The notes beneath the pieces are model-generated. The model saw only the letters and a program-made list of their open reading frames with translations, did no database searches and was not told the DNA's origin. The position numbers were made by a program, and so were the translations under genes. Positions 2,255 through 63,786 of a DNA stretch of 64,000 bases are shown piece after piece (position 1 is the first letter of the stretch; every line of letters begins with the position of its first letter). The stretch is taken from positions 248,001-312,000 of the IMG/VR virus record IMGVR_UViG_3300036853_000446; one strand, 5' to 3'.

Positions 2255-2691
2255 CGTGAGACGACCGCGGACTTCGTGACGACCCCACGAATGCCGGCCC
2301 CCGTGATATCGATGTTGCCCGTCGCGCGGTTGTATTCGATGCGCTCGACGCCTCGGAACTTCGCTTCGACCGCCTCCCGCGTGAGCGTCTCGAGGGGCGG
2401 CGACTCGGCGCCGTTCATCCTAGTGAACGTCGCGTACCCCCGGCACCACTCGGACGGGTGCGCGTGGTGCATGCGACCGCTCGCGTACCTGACGCGGATC
2501 TCGCCCTTGCAGCCGGGGCAGGTGTCGACGAAGTCCCCCAGCGAATGGTCGCGACTGAGCCAGCGCCCCATCATGTCGAGGTAGCCGTCGGCGAGCTTGT
2601 CTCCCTTCGCAGCGCTCTGCCTTTGTGCGTTCAGATGCCTTTGTCGGCGTGCGTCGAGCTGTCGTCTGCGCTTCACGTCGTCTTTCGCCAT
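2251..2691 (-). CDS. hypothetical protein with CxxC
   Basis: ATG 2691, downstream of the array trailer; CPGC...H...C. Confidence 0.55.
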   Translation of the reverse strand: MAKDDVKRRRQLDARRQRHLNAQRQSAAKGDKLADGYLDMMGRWLSRDHSLGDFVDTCPGCKGEIRVRYASGRMHHAHPSEWCRGYATFTRMNGAESPPLETLTREAVEAKFRGVERIEYNRATGNIDITGAGIRGVVTKSAVVSR

Positions 2692-2723
2692 ATCGGTTTC
2701 GCCATCAGCGTGTCGTGAATCTT

Positions 2724-11773: not shown

Positions 11774-12521
11774 GTCGTGGTCTGGCCTCTTAACTCGAAA
11801 GACGAGCCGTCGTTGATGGGGACATGCGCTGAGTCGTGGTTGGGTGGGCTCCACGCAGCCTCTCAAATGGTATCGAGGAGGACGTCCTTCTCGCTGAACC
11901 GTCGTGGTCTGGTGGGCTCCACGTAGCCTCTCAAATCCACCAGGACGGACAAGCGTCCCGAGTAGTCGGCGTGTCGTGGTTGGGTGGGCTCCACGCAGCC
12001 TCTGAAATCGTCGGGCGAATCGTGTCTCATGCCGACAAGGTACTCGTCGTGGTCGGGTGGGCCCCACGCAGCCTCTCAAATCCGTTGAGAGAAGTAGTGA
12101 CCACTCGGTGTGGGATCTCGTCGTGGTCTGGTGGGCTCCACGCAGCCTCTCAAATTTTTCCTAAGGAGCGAGCCGGCGAACTATCCTCCCCGTCGTGGTC
12201 GGGTGGGCCCCACGCAGCCTCTCAAATCAAGATACCGCTGGTGCGAGACATTGGTGATACGTGGTCGTGGTTAGGTGGGCTCCACGCAGCTTCTCAAAAT
12301 CCATGACGGCGTCAGCGGTTGGTGAGGGTCATCCTCAAGTCGTGGTTGGGTGGGCTCCACGCAGCCTCTCAAATCAGCCGCTCAAATTACGCACCTCGCC
12401 ACGCTGGTTCCGTCGTGGTCAGGTGGGCTCCACGCAGCCTCTCAAATTCTTGTAATCGCCTGCGAGCCGTCCAGCCGCGGGTTGCGTCGTGGTCTGGTGG
12501 GCTCCACGCAGCCGCTCAAAT
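11774..12521 (-). CRISPR. CRISPR array A2 (10 repeats plus 1 internally deleted trailer repeat)
   Basis: Repeats at 11833, 11901, 11973, 12046, 12120, 12192, 12264, 12339, 12412, 12486; degenerate copy 11774-11794. Confidence 0.97.
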
Positions 12522-17550: not shown

Positions 17551-18318
17551 ATCGTGGTCTGGTAAGGCTCCATACAGCCTCGCGAATAAGTTCACAGCTT
17601 GAAAGGTCAAGGACAGATCGGGTTGTCGTGGTTGGGTGGGCTCCACGCAGCCTCTCAAATCGGTCGCCTTTGACACGGGCATACTCATATCATGCTGCCA
17701 GTCGTGGTTGGGTGGGCTCCACGCAGCCTCTCAAATCCGAGCACCACCGCGTCGCGACGCGGAAGGTAGTGGGGTCGTGGTTGGGTGGGCTCCACGCAGC
17801 CTCTCAAATCGCAAGCCAAGGATGCACGTGCTACGGACGACCGCGTGTCGTGGTTGGGTGGGCTCCACGCAGCCTCTCAAATCAAGCTGGCGGAAGCTGC
17901 CGTTGACCACTCTTCTATCGTCGTGGTCGGGTGGGCTCCACGCAGCCTCTCAAATCTGAACCTCGAGTGGATGCTTAATGGACCGCTCATCGTCGTGGTC
18001 GGGTGGGCTCCACGCAGCCTCTCAAATCCAATGCGCGACGAGGCTCGTCACCTGCGTCGGATTGTCGTGGTTGGGTGGGCTCCACGCAGCCTCTCAAATT
18101 CGCCTCGAAGCAGTCGGCACTCGTATCGGATGCGCACGTCGTGGTCGGGTGGGCTCCACGCAGCCTCTCAAATTCTGCGCCTGCAGGTGCGGGCTACCGA
18201 TCACAGTGGCGTCGTGGTCGGGTGGGCTCCACGCAGCCTCTCAAATCCGTCAAGTCCTCGGCCCCGAGACGGAGGTTGTGCTGTCGTGGTCGGGTGGGCT
18301 CCACGCAGCCTCTCAAAT
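17551..18318 (-). CRISPR. CRISPR array A3 (10 repeats plus 1 degenerate trailer repeat)
   Basis: Repeats at 17625, 17701, 17774, 17847, 17920, 17992, 18064, 18138, 18211, 18283; degenerate copy 17551-17587. Confidence 0.97.
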
Positions 18319-42159: not shown

Positions 42160-43602
42160 ATGGCAAAGAGGAAGTCAAAGACGACGAGTGTCCAGCCCGG
42201 TGAAGTGCTGAAGGGGTTTCGCGTCAAACTCAGACCGACCCAGGAGGATCTGCGTTACCTATCGACGGCTCAAGTCGAGCTGATGACGATGTGGAACATC
42301 CTCGTGATAACGTGGAAGACGCACGTCGATTACTGCGTTCGGCATTGCGAGGACCTCGGGCTCATCGGACCCGTACCGCCACGACCGACCTCGGACCAAG
42401 ACACGAACGTGCCCGAAGAGATCGCCGAATGGGAGGAGTACGCGGCACTCTGCCGTGAACGCCGCCGAAGCGCTCGCGAGCAGTGTAAGACCGTCGAGGG
42501 TCTGACACGGCGCGACTGGGCGAATCGAGCCCTCGATTACCACCAACTTGATCTCACGGAGAAGGCTCGAGAGCAGACGCAGATCGATTACCGCGTCCTG
42601 CGGTCCGCCGTGAAGGGCGTCACGACGGCCCATATGGCCCAGGCCGTCATCGAGACTTACAAGGCGTCATTGCAGAAAGGGCGGCCGCCACCGAAGCTCA
42701 AGAGACGCCCGCTCGAGATGCCTCTCTTGCTTCGCAGCGGTAAGGATTTGCTTACGCTTTCAGCGAACCACTCCACCCGAACGACGGCGTCCGGGAAGAA
42801 GCGGCTCACCGGCTCCCACCACTGCATCGTCAAGTTTGGCCCGCTCAAGATCGGGGGACGATTCAACCGCCCGCCGTCGGGTCCCTTCCTCCAGGGCATT
42901 TCGATCGGGCTCGAGAAGGACGGCTGGTACGCCTCCGCGAAGGTCCGGACCCTACCTGAGGATCTGCCGAAGCCAACGAAGGAAATCATCGCGATCAACC
43001 CGGGACTCGAATGCCTCTACGCCGACAATGAGGGTTATGTGATCGAGAACCCACGGGGCAACGCTTACTCCCTCCGGATGCGCGAGATGAGCGATTGGAT
43101 CGACGACGCCGAAACCCAGTGGGACGAAGCCCACCGTCGCAACCATCAAGCTCGATATGCCGAGCGTTTCGCGCGGCACACGGAGGACCTCATCTACAGC
43201 CGCATCCTCCCGAAGCTCGCCGATTACGAGACGATTCTCATCGGCAAGGCCGGCAAAACCGCCGCTCAAGGTCGACAAAACCGCATCAGTAAGAACGACG
43301 AGGGCGGCTACGTTTCGGCCATGAGCTTGATGCAGCAGCTCATCATCCAGAGGTATGGCCTCTATGACCCCGACGAGAATCCGACGGGGCGAGTGCGAGT
43401 GCTGGAGTCCATGGGAATTTCCCGGAGGTGCTCGCGTTGCGGAACCGAGCACGCAACCCGTTATCAACGCAACAATTTACGCCGGTATGACCAACAGACC
43501 GATTGCCAGGAACCCTCGTGTCGGCTCAAGATACACGTCGATGTTGGCGCCGCTCGCAACCTGCTTTCCAACTATCGGGATTTGCAGGCGGCAGCAGAAT
43601 GA
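42160..43602 (+). CDS. compact type V (TnpB/Cas12-like) effector with inactivated RuvC, 480 aa
   Basis: TnpB-like GFRVKLRPT, PKLKRR, GWYAS; RuvC-I IIAINPG (D->N), RuvC-II TILIGK (E->G), Zn finger CSRC...CQEPSC, RuvC-III HVDVGAARNL; RBS GAGGGG; array 2 nt downstream. Confidence 0.88.
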   Translation: MAKRKSKTTSVQPGEVLKGFRVKLRPTQEDLRYLSTAQVELMTMWNILVITWKTHVDYCVRHCEDLGLIGPVPPRPTSDQDTNVPEEIAEWEEYAALCRERRRSAREQCKTVEGLTRRDWANRALDYHQLDLTEKAREQTQIDYRVLRSAVKGVTTAHMAQAVIETYKASLQKGRPPPKLKRRPLEMPLLLRSGKDLLTLSANHSTRTTASGKKRLTGSHHCIVKFGPLKIGGRFNRPPSGPFLQGISIGLEKDGWYASAKVRTLPEDLPKPTKEIIAINPGLECLYADNEGYVIENPRGNAYSLRMREMSDWIDDAETQWDEAHRRNHQARYAERFARHTEDLIYSRILPKLADYETILIGKAGKTAAQGRQNRISKNDEGGYVSAMSLMQQLIIQRYGLYDPDENPTGRVRVLESMGISRRCSRCGTEHATRYQRNNLRRYDQQTDCQEPSCRLKIHVDVGAARNLLSNYRDLQAAAE

Positions 43603-43604
43603 CC

Positions 43605-44869
43605 CTCAGAACGGCAGCGTGGTGCCTACCCTCCCACGACGAGGAGTTCGGTGGCCGCGCGCGATGATGTGCAAGACCTCAGAACGGCAGCGTGGTGCCT
43701 ACCCTCCCACGACACGAGGTCGGAAAGAGTCTCAATCTCGGCAATCTCACGCTCAGAACGGCAGCGTGGTGCCTACCCTCCCACGACGACCTGCGGAAGA
43801 AGGGCCTTCGCCGATCTACTTGGGCTCAGAACGGCAGCGTGGTGCCTACCCTCCCACGACGAAGTGACGTCTACCAATTGGGCTTGGTCCTCTATCACTC
43901 AGAACGGCAGCGTGGTGCCTACCCTCCCACGACTTATGGGGATGAACCGAGAACCAGCCTCGATCGATGTCTCAGAACGGCAGCGTGGTGCCTACCCTTC
44001 CACGATAGCCGCGTCCTCCAAACTGCCGAATCGATTCCGAAACTCAGAACGGCAGCGTGGTGCCTACCCTCCCACGACGGCATCTCCACTCGTTCCCTCG
44101 TCCTCCGGGTATGGACCTCAGAACGGCAGCGTGGTGCCTACCCTCCCACGACTACGGCTGGCGGTCCCCCGCCAAACGAGGTTGGCGTGCTCAGAACGGC
44201 AGCGTGGTGCCTACCCTCCCACGACGAAACATCACGCGCCTGGGCAACAGCATCAGCGTCGCCATCTCAGAACGGCAGCGTGGTGCCTACCCTCCCACGA
44301 CCAACGACATGACCCCGTGGAACCTGTGAGCTTGCTCGGCGCTCCTCGGAACGGCAGCGTGGTGCCTACCCTCCCACGACGGAAAGACTCGTTCGTGATC
44401 CCGAGTCGACCCCCATGCTCAGAACGGCAGCGTGGTGCCTACCCTTCCACGACGAGGAGTTCGGTGGCCGCGATGGTGATGCGCAAGCCCTCAGCATGGC
44501 AGCGTGGTGCCTACCCCTCCACGACTTCGAGCAACACGTCAACGCGCGTATTGGCTCGTTCAGCCTCAGAGTGGCAGCGCGGTGCCTACCCTTCCGCGAC
44601 ACGTCCCCCAGTTAGCGGAAAGCCTCGGTACTGGTCTCAGAATGGCAGCGTGGTGCCTACCCTTCCACGACCACATCCGTGGATAGAGAGTCCCCCTCCG
44701 GAGTCAACCTCAGAACGGCAGCGTGGTGCCTACCCTTCCACGACTTTCCGATCTCGTTAAAGTAGATGCGGACTTATGGCAGCGTGGTGCCTACCCTTCC
44801 ACGACGTGCACGGGTCTTCTCAAAGAAAGACGCCTCAGAACGGCAGCGTGGTGCCTACCATTCCACGAC
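43605..44869 (+). CRISPR. CRISPR array B (18 repeats, 17 spacers)
   Basis: 36-nt CTCAGAACGGCAGCGTGGTGCCTACCCTYCCACGAC at 43605, 43678, 43752, 43825, 43898, 43971, 44043, 44117, 44190, 44266, 44345, 44418, 44490, 44565, 44636, 44709, ~44770 (5'-degenerate), 44834; decay increases away from the gene. Confidence 0.98.
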
Positions 44870-45478: not shown

Positions 45479-45626
45479 GGTGGGTAAGACTACCACTTTT
45501 TGCTGCTGCGAGTGAAGGGTCTCTTTACTCCGCCGGGCCGCGGTGCGGTGAGCCTCTCATAGGTACCTTTGCAACGCCTCAAGCCCGCCTCGCCAACCAA
45601 CCAACAGGAGGCAGGCAGTACTCCCG

Positions 45627-45975: not shown

Positions 45976-46160
45976 GGTTGAGAGGCTGCGTGGAGCCCAC
46001 CCAACTACGACGGTATCATTCGGCTTTTTATCAGGTCCCCCGATCCGGAGTAACTTGCGAGGCTGCGTGGAGCCCACCCAACTACGATATGCCCGTGCCG
46101 ACGTGGCGCTTCCAAGAAAGGTACATTTGAGAGGCTGCGTGGAGCCCATCACACCACGAC
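45976..46160 (+). CRISPR. CRISPR mini-array A4 (3 family-A repeats)
   Basis: Repeats at 45976, 46053, 46125 in the ATTTGAGAGG...CCACGAC orientation. Confidence 0.9.
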
Positions 46161-46250
46161 TTGCTTGGATCGTTGACTTGATAGGTTTTCAACCCTGATG
46201 ACAGGCTTGCACCGATGAACCCGGTTGGCTCGACCCCAAACCCGGGTAAC

Positions 46251-46286
46251 GATGAAATGGCAGCGTGGTGCCTACCCTTCCACGAC
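46251..46286 (+). repeat. orphan family-B CRISPR repeat
   Basis: GATGAAATGGCAGCGTGGTGCCTACCCTTCCACGAC, 3' 28 nt match repeat B. Confidence 0.85.
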
Positions 46287-58681: not shown

Positions 58682-58846
58682 ATGGCAGCACGTCGGACCC
58701 GTTCACCATCACAAGCGCCATCAGAGCCGAATGCCGAGACGGTGCGCGTAACCTGTTACCAGGTCGACGTTTCGCGGGAACAGCAACAAGCCATTCATCA
58801 GCAGCTTCTCGAATTACTCGCTGAAATTTATCGGAACCTTAAATGA
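58682..58846 (+). CDS. 54-aa protein coupled to the recombinase
   Basis: MAARRTRS...QLLELLAEIYRNLK; ATGA overlap with 58843; not in ORF track. Confidence 0.55.
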   Translation: MAARRTRSPSQAPSEPNAETVRVTCYQVDVSREQQQAIHQQLLELLAEIYRNLK

Positions 58847-60420
58847 AGGCTGCAATCTACGCCCGTGTGTCGTCCGACCAGCAAAGGGAGCGCCACACCA
58901 TCGGCTCGCAGCTCACCGAGCTACCCAAGTACGCAAAAAGCCAAGGCTGGACGGTTGTCCGACTCTACCAAGACGACGGCAAGTCGGGAGAGAGTATCGA
59001 CGGGCGTCCAGAGTTTCAGGCACTTCTCGAGGACGCCGAGAAGAAACTCTTTGAAATTGTCCTCGTCATCGACCTCGACCGCATCACTCGCTCGAAACGT
59101 GATCAGGAGGGGGCTTTCATCTACGACACGTTTCGGTTGCATGGCATCAAGCTGGCGACTCCGAGCAACGGTCTCATCGATCTCGAGAATGAGGACCAGG
59201 ACCTTCAGATCGGTATCCTTCAGGCTTTCGCAAAGTTTGAGAAGCGGAAATTTCTCCGCCGAACGATGCGAGGTAAGTATCAGGCCGCTAAAGACGGGAA
59301 GCGGTATGGTTCGATCGATCCCTACGGGTATCGGTGGGTTATCGACCCGGTCTTGAAGGCGGGGGGCTCGTACCAGATCGTCGAGGACGAAGCTAAAGTC
59401 GTTCGTCGCATCTACAGCCTCGCTCTCGAAGGTCATGGCGTGGCAATGATCGCTTGGATGTTAGAGAATGAGGGTATTCGGACGCGACCACGCGCACCCC
59501 GTGGCACCGAAGGCAAGATCGCCGGTCCTTGGTGGCGCTCGTCTGTGCTGAAGGTTCTGCATTCCGTGACGTACACGGGATCGTTCAAAGTCCTCAAGGG
59601 GAAGGAGAGCGAACCCCTCTCGATCAAGGTCCCGCCTATTGTCACCCGGGCAACCTGGGACGCAGCCCAGAGGGCGCTCACACAGCGCAAGATGTCCTCG
59701 GGCGCTCCGGCACGACACGACCACCTCTTACGCGGATGCGCCTCGTGCGGCGTCTGCGGGTACAAGATGTGGATCGTTACCCCTAGGGCCGGCAAAAGCG
59801 CTGCCTACTACAGATGCTGCACGACCAACGGATGGCGCGGCATGGGCCTCAAGGGCCCATGTGGCAACAAGCACCACCGAGTGGACCGCACGGACCATGA
59901 GGTCCAGACGAAGGTGCTCGAGATTCTGCAAAATCCAAAGCTGCTAGCTCAAGCGTGTTCGTTGCAGGGTGAACCTACGGACGGGGTCGACTGGAAAGGT
60001 CAGCTCCGAGGTCTCGAGCAAAAGCTTGCGATACTGGATGAGGCCGCGTCCGACGCGATGGTCCGTCAGCGTCGGGGAATCATTCCTTCCGCGGTCGCCG
60101 AGAAGGAACTCCTGAACATTGCCCGCGAGCGAAAGCTCGTTGACCGAAACGTCAAACTAGCGCGTGTCAGATCCGGTAAAGCCTCAGCTGAACGCAGCCT
60201 GCGCCAAAATATCGAGGATCAAGCAAAGGCCCTAAGCAGCGGACTCGATCAAGCGGACTTTGAAACGCGACGGAAGATTATCACCCTGCTCCTTCCGAGA
60301 GAGCTGGGCTGCGGTGTCGTCCTGCACCGGGACGGTGGTATCGACATCAAATGGGTCCTGCCACTGCCCGGCGACATCGAGCACGTGGAACTACGCACCG
60401 CCCTCAAAAAAGTTGGGTGA
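58843..60420 (+). CDS. large serine recombinase (integrase)
   Basis: AAIYARVSS, DDGKSG, RPEFQALL, DLDRITR, PYGY recombinase domain, CGVC...YYRC...C Zn ribbon, coiled coil. Confidence 0.95.
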   Translation: MKAAIYARVSSDQQRERHTIGSQLTELPKYAKSQGWTVVRLYQDDGKSGESIDGRPEFQALLEDAEKKLFEIVLVIDLDRITRSKRDQEGAFIYDTFRLHGIKLATPSNGLIDLENEDQDLQIGILQAFAKFEKRKFLRRTMRGKYQAAKDGKRYGSIDPYGYRWVIDPVLKAGGSYQIVEDEAKVVRRIYSLALEGHGVAMIAWMLENEGIRTRPRAPRGTEGKIAGPWWRSSVLKVLHSVTYTGSFKVLKGKESEPLSIKVPPIVTRATWDAAQRALTQRKMSSGAPARHDHLLRGCASCGVCGYKMWIVTPRAGKSAAYYRCCTTNGWRGMGLKGPCGNKHHRVDRTDHEVQTKVLEILQNPKLLAQACSLQGEPTDGVDWKGQLRGLEQKLAILDEAASDAMVRQRRGIIPSAVAEKELLNIARERKLVDRNVKLARVRSGKASAERSLRQNIEDQAKALSSGLDQADFETRRKIITLLLPRELGCGVVLHRDGGIDIKWVLPLPGDIEHVELRTALKKVG

Positions 60421-63636: not shown

Positions 63637-63786
63637 ATTTCAGAGGCTGCGTGGAGCCCGCCCAACCACGACTCATTCAATCGGCAGAACTTGGTTCAAA
63701 TATGAAGGGCTGCGTGGAGCCCACCCAACCACGACAAGATTCACGACACGCTGTGAGAGGCCGCGTGGAGCCCACCCAACCACGAC
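63637..63786 (+). CRISPR. CRISPR mini-array A5 (3 family-A repeats, short spacers)
   Basis: Repeats at 63637, 63700, ~63751; spacers 27 and 15-18 nt; AT-rich upstream with TACAAT at 63604-63609. Confidence 0.9.

Follow-up and report, generated by a model that had tools for sequence, protein, structure and literature searches.

A jumbo-phage CRISPR array beside a miniature type V effector with a predicted inactive RuvC site

The window analysed here is a stretch of 64,000 nucleotides (positions 248,001 to 312,000) of the IMG/VR virus record IMGVR_UViG_3300036853_000446. The element under study, termed array B, is a CRISPR array at window positions 43605-44869 (+ strand), in which 17 spacers of 25-43 nt alternate with 18 copies of a 36-nt repeat, CTCAGAACGGCAGCGTGGTGCCTACCCTCCCACGAC. 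On balance, array B probably holds the guides of a miniature type V effector that is encoded by a jumbo phage, has a naturally inactive RuvC site and would silence foreign DNA by binding only, in the manner of Cas12m. Spacers copied from protein-coding genes of foreign DNA, from both strands, are part of this explanation. One spacer certainly derives from a Hanks-type kinase gene and another probably from a MazE/AbrB-type antitoxin gene. CRISPR effectors that act by binding only have been described chiefly in bacteria and on plasmids, examples being Cas12m, array-linked nuclease-dead Cas12f (dCas12f), TldR and type IV systems. The predicted effector of this kind considered here is carried by a real jumbo phage and belongs to an unnamed clade branching from nuclease-active, array-linked relatives, and at least one of its guides comes from a regulatory gene and not from a virion gene.

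The effector and its RuvC site

The gene preceding array B (42160-43602, + strand) encodes a 480-aa effector of the TnpB/Cas12f fold that is predicted to be RuvC-inactive (N280, G362, D461). Pfam yielded a weak match to Cas12f1-like TNB (E 2e-4), and profile matches in the PDB were to Fanzor2 and Cas12f. An AlphaFold2 model (mean predicted local distance difference test score, pLDDT, 75.5) retrieved TnpB (8iaz) and AsCas12f (8j12) as top Foldseek matches (E 1e-11, probability 1.0) as well as structures of Cas12p and Cas12m, with E values from 1e-11 to 1e-8 overall at about 14% identity. On these matches the protein counts as a single effector of the TnpB/Cas12 fold, which comprises wedge (WED), recognition (REC), RuvC and Zn-ribbon/TNB parts. 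The gene is present in a single copy, a tblastn search of the contig having given no second effector. The family is rare, with 13 homologues among 5.8 billion clustered proteins; a profile search of IMG/VR returned no relative beyond the effector's own contig, and an exhaustive profile search collected 50 representative clusters at E<1e-30.

The RuvC motifs divide this family. Every member of the clade that contains the window protein (P0001-12, P0016-19 and P0021) has Asn at RuvC-I (AINPG vs GIDVG) and Gly, Ser, Ala or another residue other than Glu at RuvC-II (TILIGKAG vs TIVVEDL), and retains the Asp of RuvC-III. The intact D-E-D triad, which is kept in 30 more distant full-length relatives, is absent from the window protein. 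That the effector is nuclease-dead, as the first-pass annotation of this DNA had supposed, is supported by this alignment. About 18 members, with identities as low as about 50%, have the Asn/non-Glu state in common, and all are full-length open reading frames (ORFs). Because the clade keeps an identity of 52-72%, intact Zn-ribbon cysteines and full length, its members appear to be working proteins and not pseudogenes, which argues for a conserved non-cutting function. Separate losses of RuvC residues are seen in at least three further lineages of the family (P0023, P0024 and P0037, with S/E/R, G/G/- and S/D/-, respectively), two of which also lack the C-terminal Zn ribbon.

As judged from profile scores, the family is an unnamed branch near types V-F and V-U4, because the active relative P0022 best fits the PADLOC models of Cas12f (PDLC01700, E 3e-29) and Cas12u4 (E 3e-28), and the NCBIfam matches of the family all lie well under their cut-offs (guided_TnpB 23.6 bits vs a cut-off of 100). 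The window protein itself reaches only E 6e-5 to 4e-3 with models of the Cas12f/Cas12u4 type (PADLOC Cas12f, E 4e-3), and the NCBIfam Cas12f2 model did not match the clade member P0001.

Pairing of effector and array, and the guide RNA

The effector lies adjacent to its cognate CRISPR array, the first repeat of array B beginning 2 nt past the stop codon of the effector gene. The same arrangement recurs on unrelated contigs, since an array begins no more than about 10 nt from the stop codon in the dead relatives P0010 (L033) and P0006 (L034/L035) and likewise in the active P0022 (L039-41). In L042, the dead relative P0017 is followed by one repeat and one guide-length stretch and no array. Its repeat (L042:2488-2561), which stands beside a RusA gene, forms the same pseudoknot (GGCC-GCGCAG-GGCC ... 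CUGCGAC), and the arrangement is TldR-like, with a fixed guide.

All these repeats have a common architecture, in which a 4-bp stem (positions 9-12 with 19-22, GGCN/N'GCC) closes a 6-nt loop, and five loop bases (14-18, CGUGG) pair with positions 30-34 (CCACG) in the tail, ending two bases before the spacer. Over 17 distinct repeats the proposed partners pair in 98.7% of cells, compared with 33-48% when the partners are slid, and five of the pairs have changed on both sides. In the repeat at 44565-44600, for example, the loop reads GCGCGG and the tail CCGCGAC, compensatory changes that keep the pseudoknot, and in the L033 repeat the corresponding stretches are GUGCAG and CUGCAAC. The G-U pairs fit the + strand only. 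As shown by this covariation, the repeat is a pseudoknot handle located 5' of the spacer, as in type V systems that use a CRISPR RNA (crRNA) only. No anti-repeat to the array B repeat that might belong to a trans-activating crRNA (tracrRNA) was found within about 3 kb, and the crRNA appears to work without tracrRNA. The idea that the phage arrays borrow a Cas protein of the host was rejected, for the repeat architecture co-varies with the effector family on unrelated contigs.

Within array B, 12 of the 18 repeats are identical or differ by 1 nt. The repeats decay towards the 3' end, from 44490 on, which places the leader side at 43605, adjoining the effector gene. A 369-aa ORF that runs through the array (43651-44760) was rejected as an artefact, the repeat having no stop in any forward frame. 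Spacer 1 (43641-43677, +) and spacer 12 (44454-44489, +) are identical over their first 19 nt and then differ by five substitutions and a 1-nt indel; they seem to stem from two acquisition events at variants of a single target site. The part that they share is the end presumed to be proximal to the protospacer adjacent motif (PAM).

A spacer from a kinase gene

The first-pass annotation had read two spacers of array B as protein-coding fragments, and the positions and translations that it gave for both (43861-43897 and 44226-44265) are correct to the base. Spacer 4 (43861-43897, +) encodes SDVYQLGLVLY in frame 3 (43863-43895), in full [R/G]SDVYQLGLVLY[H/Q], and carries in frame the kinase subdomain IX motif D-[VI]-[YW]-x-x-G-x-x-[LIVM]-[YFW]. 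Apart from this spacer, neither the contig (407,634 bp, translated in six frames) nor any of the 41 other spacers of the window contains the motif. A DNA pattern of the spacer, in which every third codon base was N and each Leu codon began with Y, found 30 sites, of which IMG/VR contributed 1, the JGI metagenome contigs 11 and the species genomes of GTDB 18. At all 30 the exact 11-residue peptide stands in frame inside a long ORF with kinase subdomain VIII-IX context, about 15 residues past an APE/SPEQ-type subdomain VIII. The IMG/VR ORF (L003) matches Pfam Pkinase with E 5e-33, and a Fimbriimonadaceae protein (P0015) carries PF00069/PF07714; a word-indexed protein search around the motif returned the query itself only. 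Because every pattern site falls in frame in a kinase ORF, spacer 4 is certainly a sense copy from subdomain IX of a Hanks-type Ser/Thr kinase gene, as had been proposed. In the Dokdonella metagenome-assembled genomes (L016, L021, L027; L018, L026, L031), three kinase paralogues per genome contain the exact SDVYQLGLVLY.

A probable spacer from an antitoxin gene

Spacer 9 (44226-44265, +) translates over 44228-44263 to NITRLGNSISVA, in full NITRLGNSISVA[I/M]. The resemblance to the N-terminus of AbrB/MazE proteins noted at first pass was measured against the N-terminal strand-loop motif of MazE/AbrB/SpoVT proteins (PF04014), x-[KR]-x-G-N-S-x-x-V-x-[ILV], and against a 12-column profile made from homologues of the phage's own MazE-type antitoxin, from which the spacer itself was excluded. 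The frequency of GNSxxV is about 8.6 per million codon positions over six frames, which makes 0.026 occurrences expected in all spacers together. The spacer peptide scores 13.9 bits with the profile and the next-best spacer window 3.8 bits; with a null of 1.3e-5 per window and 134 spacer windows, such a score has a chance of about 0.002, on 12 residues only. The N-termini of the phage MazE homologues (K-L-T-R-T-G-N-S-L-A-V-V-L) are near the spacer's I-T-R-L-G-N-S-I-S-V-A-[I/M]. The corresponding wobble pattern gave no match in IMG/VR, and the shorter pattern GNSISVA[IM] gave three chance matches there, all outside genes. The resemblance therefore held as a probable one, with no real IMG/VR gene carrying the peptide, and spacer 9 probably comes, in sense orientation, from the N-terminal part of a MazE/AbrB-type antitoxin gene.

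Targets and their owners

Protospacers were sought in several collections. Against the phage's own 407-kb contig, all spacers gave chance matches of 12-19 nt only. Searches with the whole of array B by blastn returned nothing from GenBank phages and one chance-level match from PLSDB plasmids (46 bits, E 0.3). A protospacer of the kinase spacer is absent from IMG/VR, the JGI metagenomes and the GTDB genomes, where the best site matches 30 of 37 nt; the wobble pattern would have caught an exact protospacer. The closest site over the 27 PAM-proximal nucleotides (24/27) lies in a gene for a 315-aa stand-alone kinase (L012). In IMG/VR, six other array-B spacers had no protospacer: the 19-mer common to spacers 1 and 12 had one chance match (L036), and merged patterns for spacers 3 and 8 and for spacers 2 and 15 had none. 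The contigs of two soil runs contained no target, an 18-nt match inside the MazE spacer being due to chance, and the spacers of the relatives (L033, L034, L039-42) matched neither the phage nor each other's contigs.

The orientation of the spacers speaks to the kind of nucleic acid that is addressed. A codon-usage classifier, 68% accurate on the phage's own genes, called 19 spacers sense and 19 antisense, and the spacers are thus without strand bias, as expected for DNA targeting. Both readable spacers have the sense of the mRNA and are therefore unable to pair with it and able to pair with the template DNA, which fits silencing at the DNA level. RNA targeting was rejected on these two grounds.

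The first-pass annotation had further proposed that the guides are aimed at cellular signalling, defence or toxin-antitoxin genes. The kinase origin and the probable antitoxin origin bear this out in part; cellular or defence ownership of the targets is not borne out, no protospacer having emerged from the searches in metagenomes and genomes, and with 2 of 42 spacers readable no claim on an enrichment of defence genes is possible. The exact kinase peptide is carried mostly by multi-domain kinases on the chromosomes of soil bacteria, the 18 GTDB carriers belonging to Dokdonella, Rhodanobacter, Planctomycetota and Fimbriimonadaceae. The identical peptide is also found in a 317-aa kinase on an IMG/VR contig, which matches phrog_2361, a phage kinase family, and adjoins a phrog_6367 gene. 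Kinase and MazE genes are also carried by mobile elements, the present phage with its MazE-Doc-like pair included. For the MazE target a rival element is the favoured owner, because silencing of an antitoxin in the own host would be self-harm, and rival phages or plasmids are in general somewhat more likely owners than the host chromosome.

Proposed mechanism and alternative readings

We infer that the array B system is expressed and processed, binds DNA and silences its targets. The + strand of the array would be transcribed, probably together with the effector gene, since the first repeat begins 2 nt after its stop codon. Each repeat folds, as the covariation shows, into a small pseudoknot right 5' of its spacer. 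By homology, the effector would bind this handle and find complementary double-stranded DNA with the 35-40-nt spacer. With two of the three RuvC carboxylates gone, binding would take place without cutting and would block RNA polymerase or replication, a natural CRISPR interference (CRISPRi) like that of Cas12m.

Several points weigh against binding-only silencing of foreign DNA by this system. No protospacer has been found for any tested spacer, so that no PAM could be derived, and DNA binding is a prediction. The loss of activity was read from an alignment alone, the RuvC-III Asp remains, and metal might in principle still be bound by the Asn of RuvC-I. The RuvC site processes the precursor crRNA (pre-crRNA) in Cas12m, Cas12c and Cas12j, and processing in the present system would have to rely on a host RNase or on a different site. 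A search for a sigma-70-like promoter gave none at the locus, and no RNA run contained it. In so far as ongoing spacer gain is concerned, Pfam detected no Cas1, and the contigs of both soil runs that hold the phage break inside the array and show no variants.

It is conceivable, if rather unlikely, that the system serves counter-defence or host take-over instead, the idea of the first-pass annotation, with guides that silence defence or signalling kinase genes and toxin-antitoxin genes of the host without killing it. A predicted dead effector would make the targeting of the host genome non-lethal, most exact-peptide carriers are chromosomal kinases of soil bacteria (18 in GTDB genomes), and TldR and array-linked dCas12f provide precedents for the repression of host genes (PMC13472631). 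Long-term host regulation would also pay if the phage is temperate, as its serine recombinase may indicate. None of the 29 genome and metagenome sites is a protospacer, however, the kinase spacer derives from the middle of its gene, a bias of the spacers towards the template strand is absent, silencing of a MazE-type antitoxin would free the toxin and harm the phage's own host cell, and the 40 other spacers are left unexplained. An improbable, bolder form of this idea is a phage that uses more than 40 guides as a multiplexed CRISPRi to shut down kinase- and toxin-antitoxin-based abortive-infection defences of its host and leaves the chromosome uncut. Dead Cas12 proteins have repeatedly been coupled to partners in nature (PMC10910872; PMC13472631), and many genes around the effector are uncharacterised, so that the protein might be a targeting module that recruits a nuclease, a transposase or a sigma factor (cf. 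Cas12k in CRISPR-associated transposons, Cas12m-Cas3, dCas12f-sigmaE). This was judged still less probable, since no gene is conserved beside the effector across L001, L033, L034, L042 and the P0011 contig, and Pfam shows no transposase, sigma factor, helicase or nuclease domains in the flanks.

A decaying relic, in which the effector has lost its activity by drift, the arrays are fossils and the kinase and MazE spacers record mere past encounters, is very improbable. Many repeats are degenerate (44490-44869, 45976-46286, 63637-63786), a Cas1 match is absent and the family is very rare; against this stand the conservation of the Asn/non-Glu state among full-length clade members, the near identity of two thirds of the array-B repeats (12/18) and the compensatory changes that preserve the pseudoknot, as in the repeat at 44565-44600. 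Binding-only silencing of foreign DNA remains the favoured reading. Should the targets be regulators of the host or of rival elements, the system would exemplify naturally occurring CRISPRi with a high degree of multiplexing in conflicts of a virus with its host or with other viruses, and silencing of host defence, if true, would amount to RNA-programmed counter-defence or host reprogramming by a virus. The 480-aa protein with its apparently tracrRNA-free crRNA is also a candidate compact DNA-binding scaffold.

Relation to known systems

Wu et al. in 2022 and Omura et al. in 2023 are said to have described binding-only interference by Cas12m. Cas12m (type V-M, formerly V-U1) is functionally closest to the window effector, being likewise a small crRNA-guided type V effector on mobile elements, and its structures 8pm4 and 8hhl are matched in Foldseek with E 3e-9 to 1e-8. 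It differs in its size (about 600 aa vs 480 aa) and shares only about 11% identity with the window protein, the PADLOC Cas12u1 model does not match P0001, and the substitution of two catalytic residues makes RuvC-dependent pre-crRNA processing unlikely in the phage protein. Cas12m silences its target by DNA binding without cutting (PMC12607003; PMC10910872).

RuvC-inactive miniature Cas12f-like proteins, some of them beside CRISPR arrays, have been proposed to be transcription repressors (Hoffmann et al., 2026; PMC13472631). The array-linked dCas12f cluster of that study is functionally also close to the window effector, and its proteins and dCas12f-sigmaE resemble it in their natural RuvC inactivity and, in some cases, in the neighbouring array. 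They are bacterial, however, and mainly from Bacteroidetes, in contrast to the 408-kb soil phage considered here. Their inactivity stems from C-terminal truncation, whereas the window effector has point substitutions and keeps a full C-terminus (CxxC...CxxC, HVDVxAARN) with Zn ribbon and RuvC-III. They use few guides, directed to promoters of their own host, compared with seven loci and at least 42 spacers without self match in the window.

TldR is also a dead protein of the TnpB fold and blocks transcription with an RNA guide, but it has one fixed omega-RNA-like guide and no array, unlike the seven array loci of the window; only the L042 relative has a single repeat and guide. Types V-U4 (Cas12n) and V-F (Cas12f/Cas14) give the best profile matches of the active relatives and have the fold and the Zn ribbon in common with the family. 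The family nevertheless scores below the NCBIfam cut-offs for these nucleases, the catalytic triad is broken in the window protein, and its repeat makes its own pseudoknot, no anti-repeat or tracrRNA having been found. Type IV CRISPR-Cas systems of plasmids have no nuclease and no adaptation genes and act in a CRISPRi-like manner in conflicts between mobile elements. They share the mobile-element carrier with array B, but their multi-subunit Class 1 effector is evolutionarily unrelated. Surveys already record phage type V homologues without RuvC motifs (PMC12607003). The kind is thus already known; new are the clade, its carriage by a jumbo phage and a guide set spread over seven loci.

The carrier phage and the remaining array loci

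The contig, 407,634 bp long and listed by IMG/VR as a virus record with a CheckV completeness of 86%, is a genuine jumbo phage, with genes for TerL (phrog_2, E 2.5e-24), a baseplate hub, ribonucleotide reductase (RNR), a helicase and a NAD-dependent ligase. It encodes a MazE-Doc-like pair of its own some 7 kb upstream of the window (G000:C1:240723-241372; L037:1474-2123), in which the gene of a 76-aa MazE/AbrB-type antitoxin overlaps (ATGA) a 140-aa ORF with a Doc/Fic-like HxFxDGNKR motif that was read by eye. Homologues of this antitoxin are named MazE and carry PF04014, and the phage genome has one such antitoxin. A large serine recombinase with Resolvase, Recombinase and Zn_ribbon_recom domains is encoded at 58843-60420 (+), and with it the jumbo phage may be capable of integration or of multimer resolution. 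The effector family also rides conjugative elements, because the dead-clade homologue P0011 (on a JGI 3300041965 contig) lies 1-10 kb from topoisomerase, TrbI, CagX, VirB8 and TrbL genes, on a contig with genes of a type IV secretion system.

Beside array B, six other loci bring the window to a total of seven array loci and 42 spacers. A mini-array of three type-A repeats (ATTTGAGAGGCTGCGTGGAGCCCACCCAACCACGAC-like; 45976-46161, +) and a solitary type-B-like repeat (46251-46286, +) follow array B. Type-A arrays of 10, 10 and 4 repeats are found at 17624-18318, 11832-12521 and 2723-2980, all on the - strand, and a degenerate type-A array of three repeats at 63637-63786 (+). The sister repeat of the six loci, ATTTGAGAGGCTGCGTGGAGCCCACCCRACCACGAC, differs from that of array B mainly in its 5' part and by a compensatory exchange within the stem (T:A to A:T). 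No large ORFs were seen flanking the sister arrays. The sequence AAGATTCACGACACGCTG after the last repeat of the 2723-2980 array (window 2687-2723) recurs at 63736-63753 in the degenerate array, which suggests that array loci far apart have recombined or that sequence was duplicated between them. Finally, 45551-45570 is an inverted 20-nt copy of 46117-46136 (90% complementary), which spans a spacer end and the first 12 nt of a type-A repeat; the copy may be either an anti-repeat or a piece of an array that was inverted.

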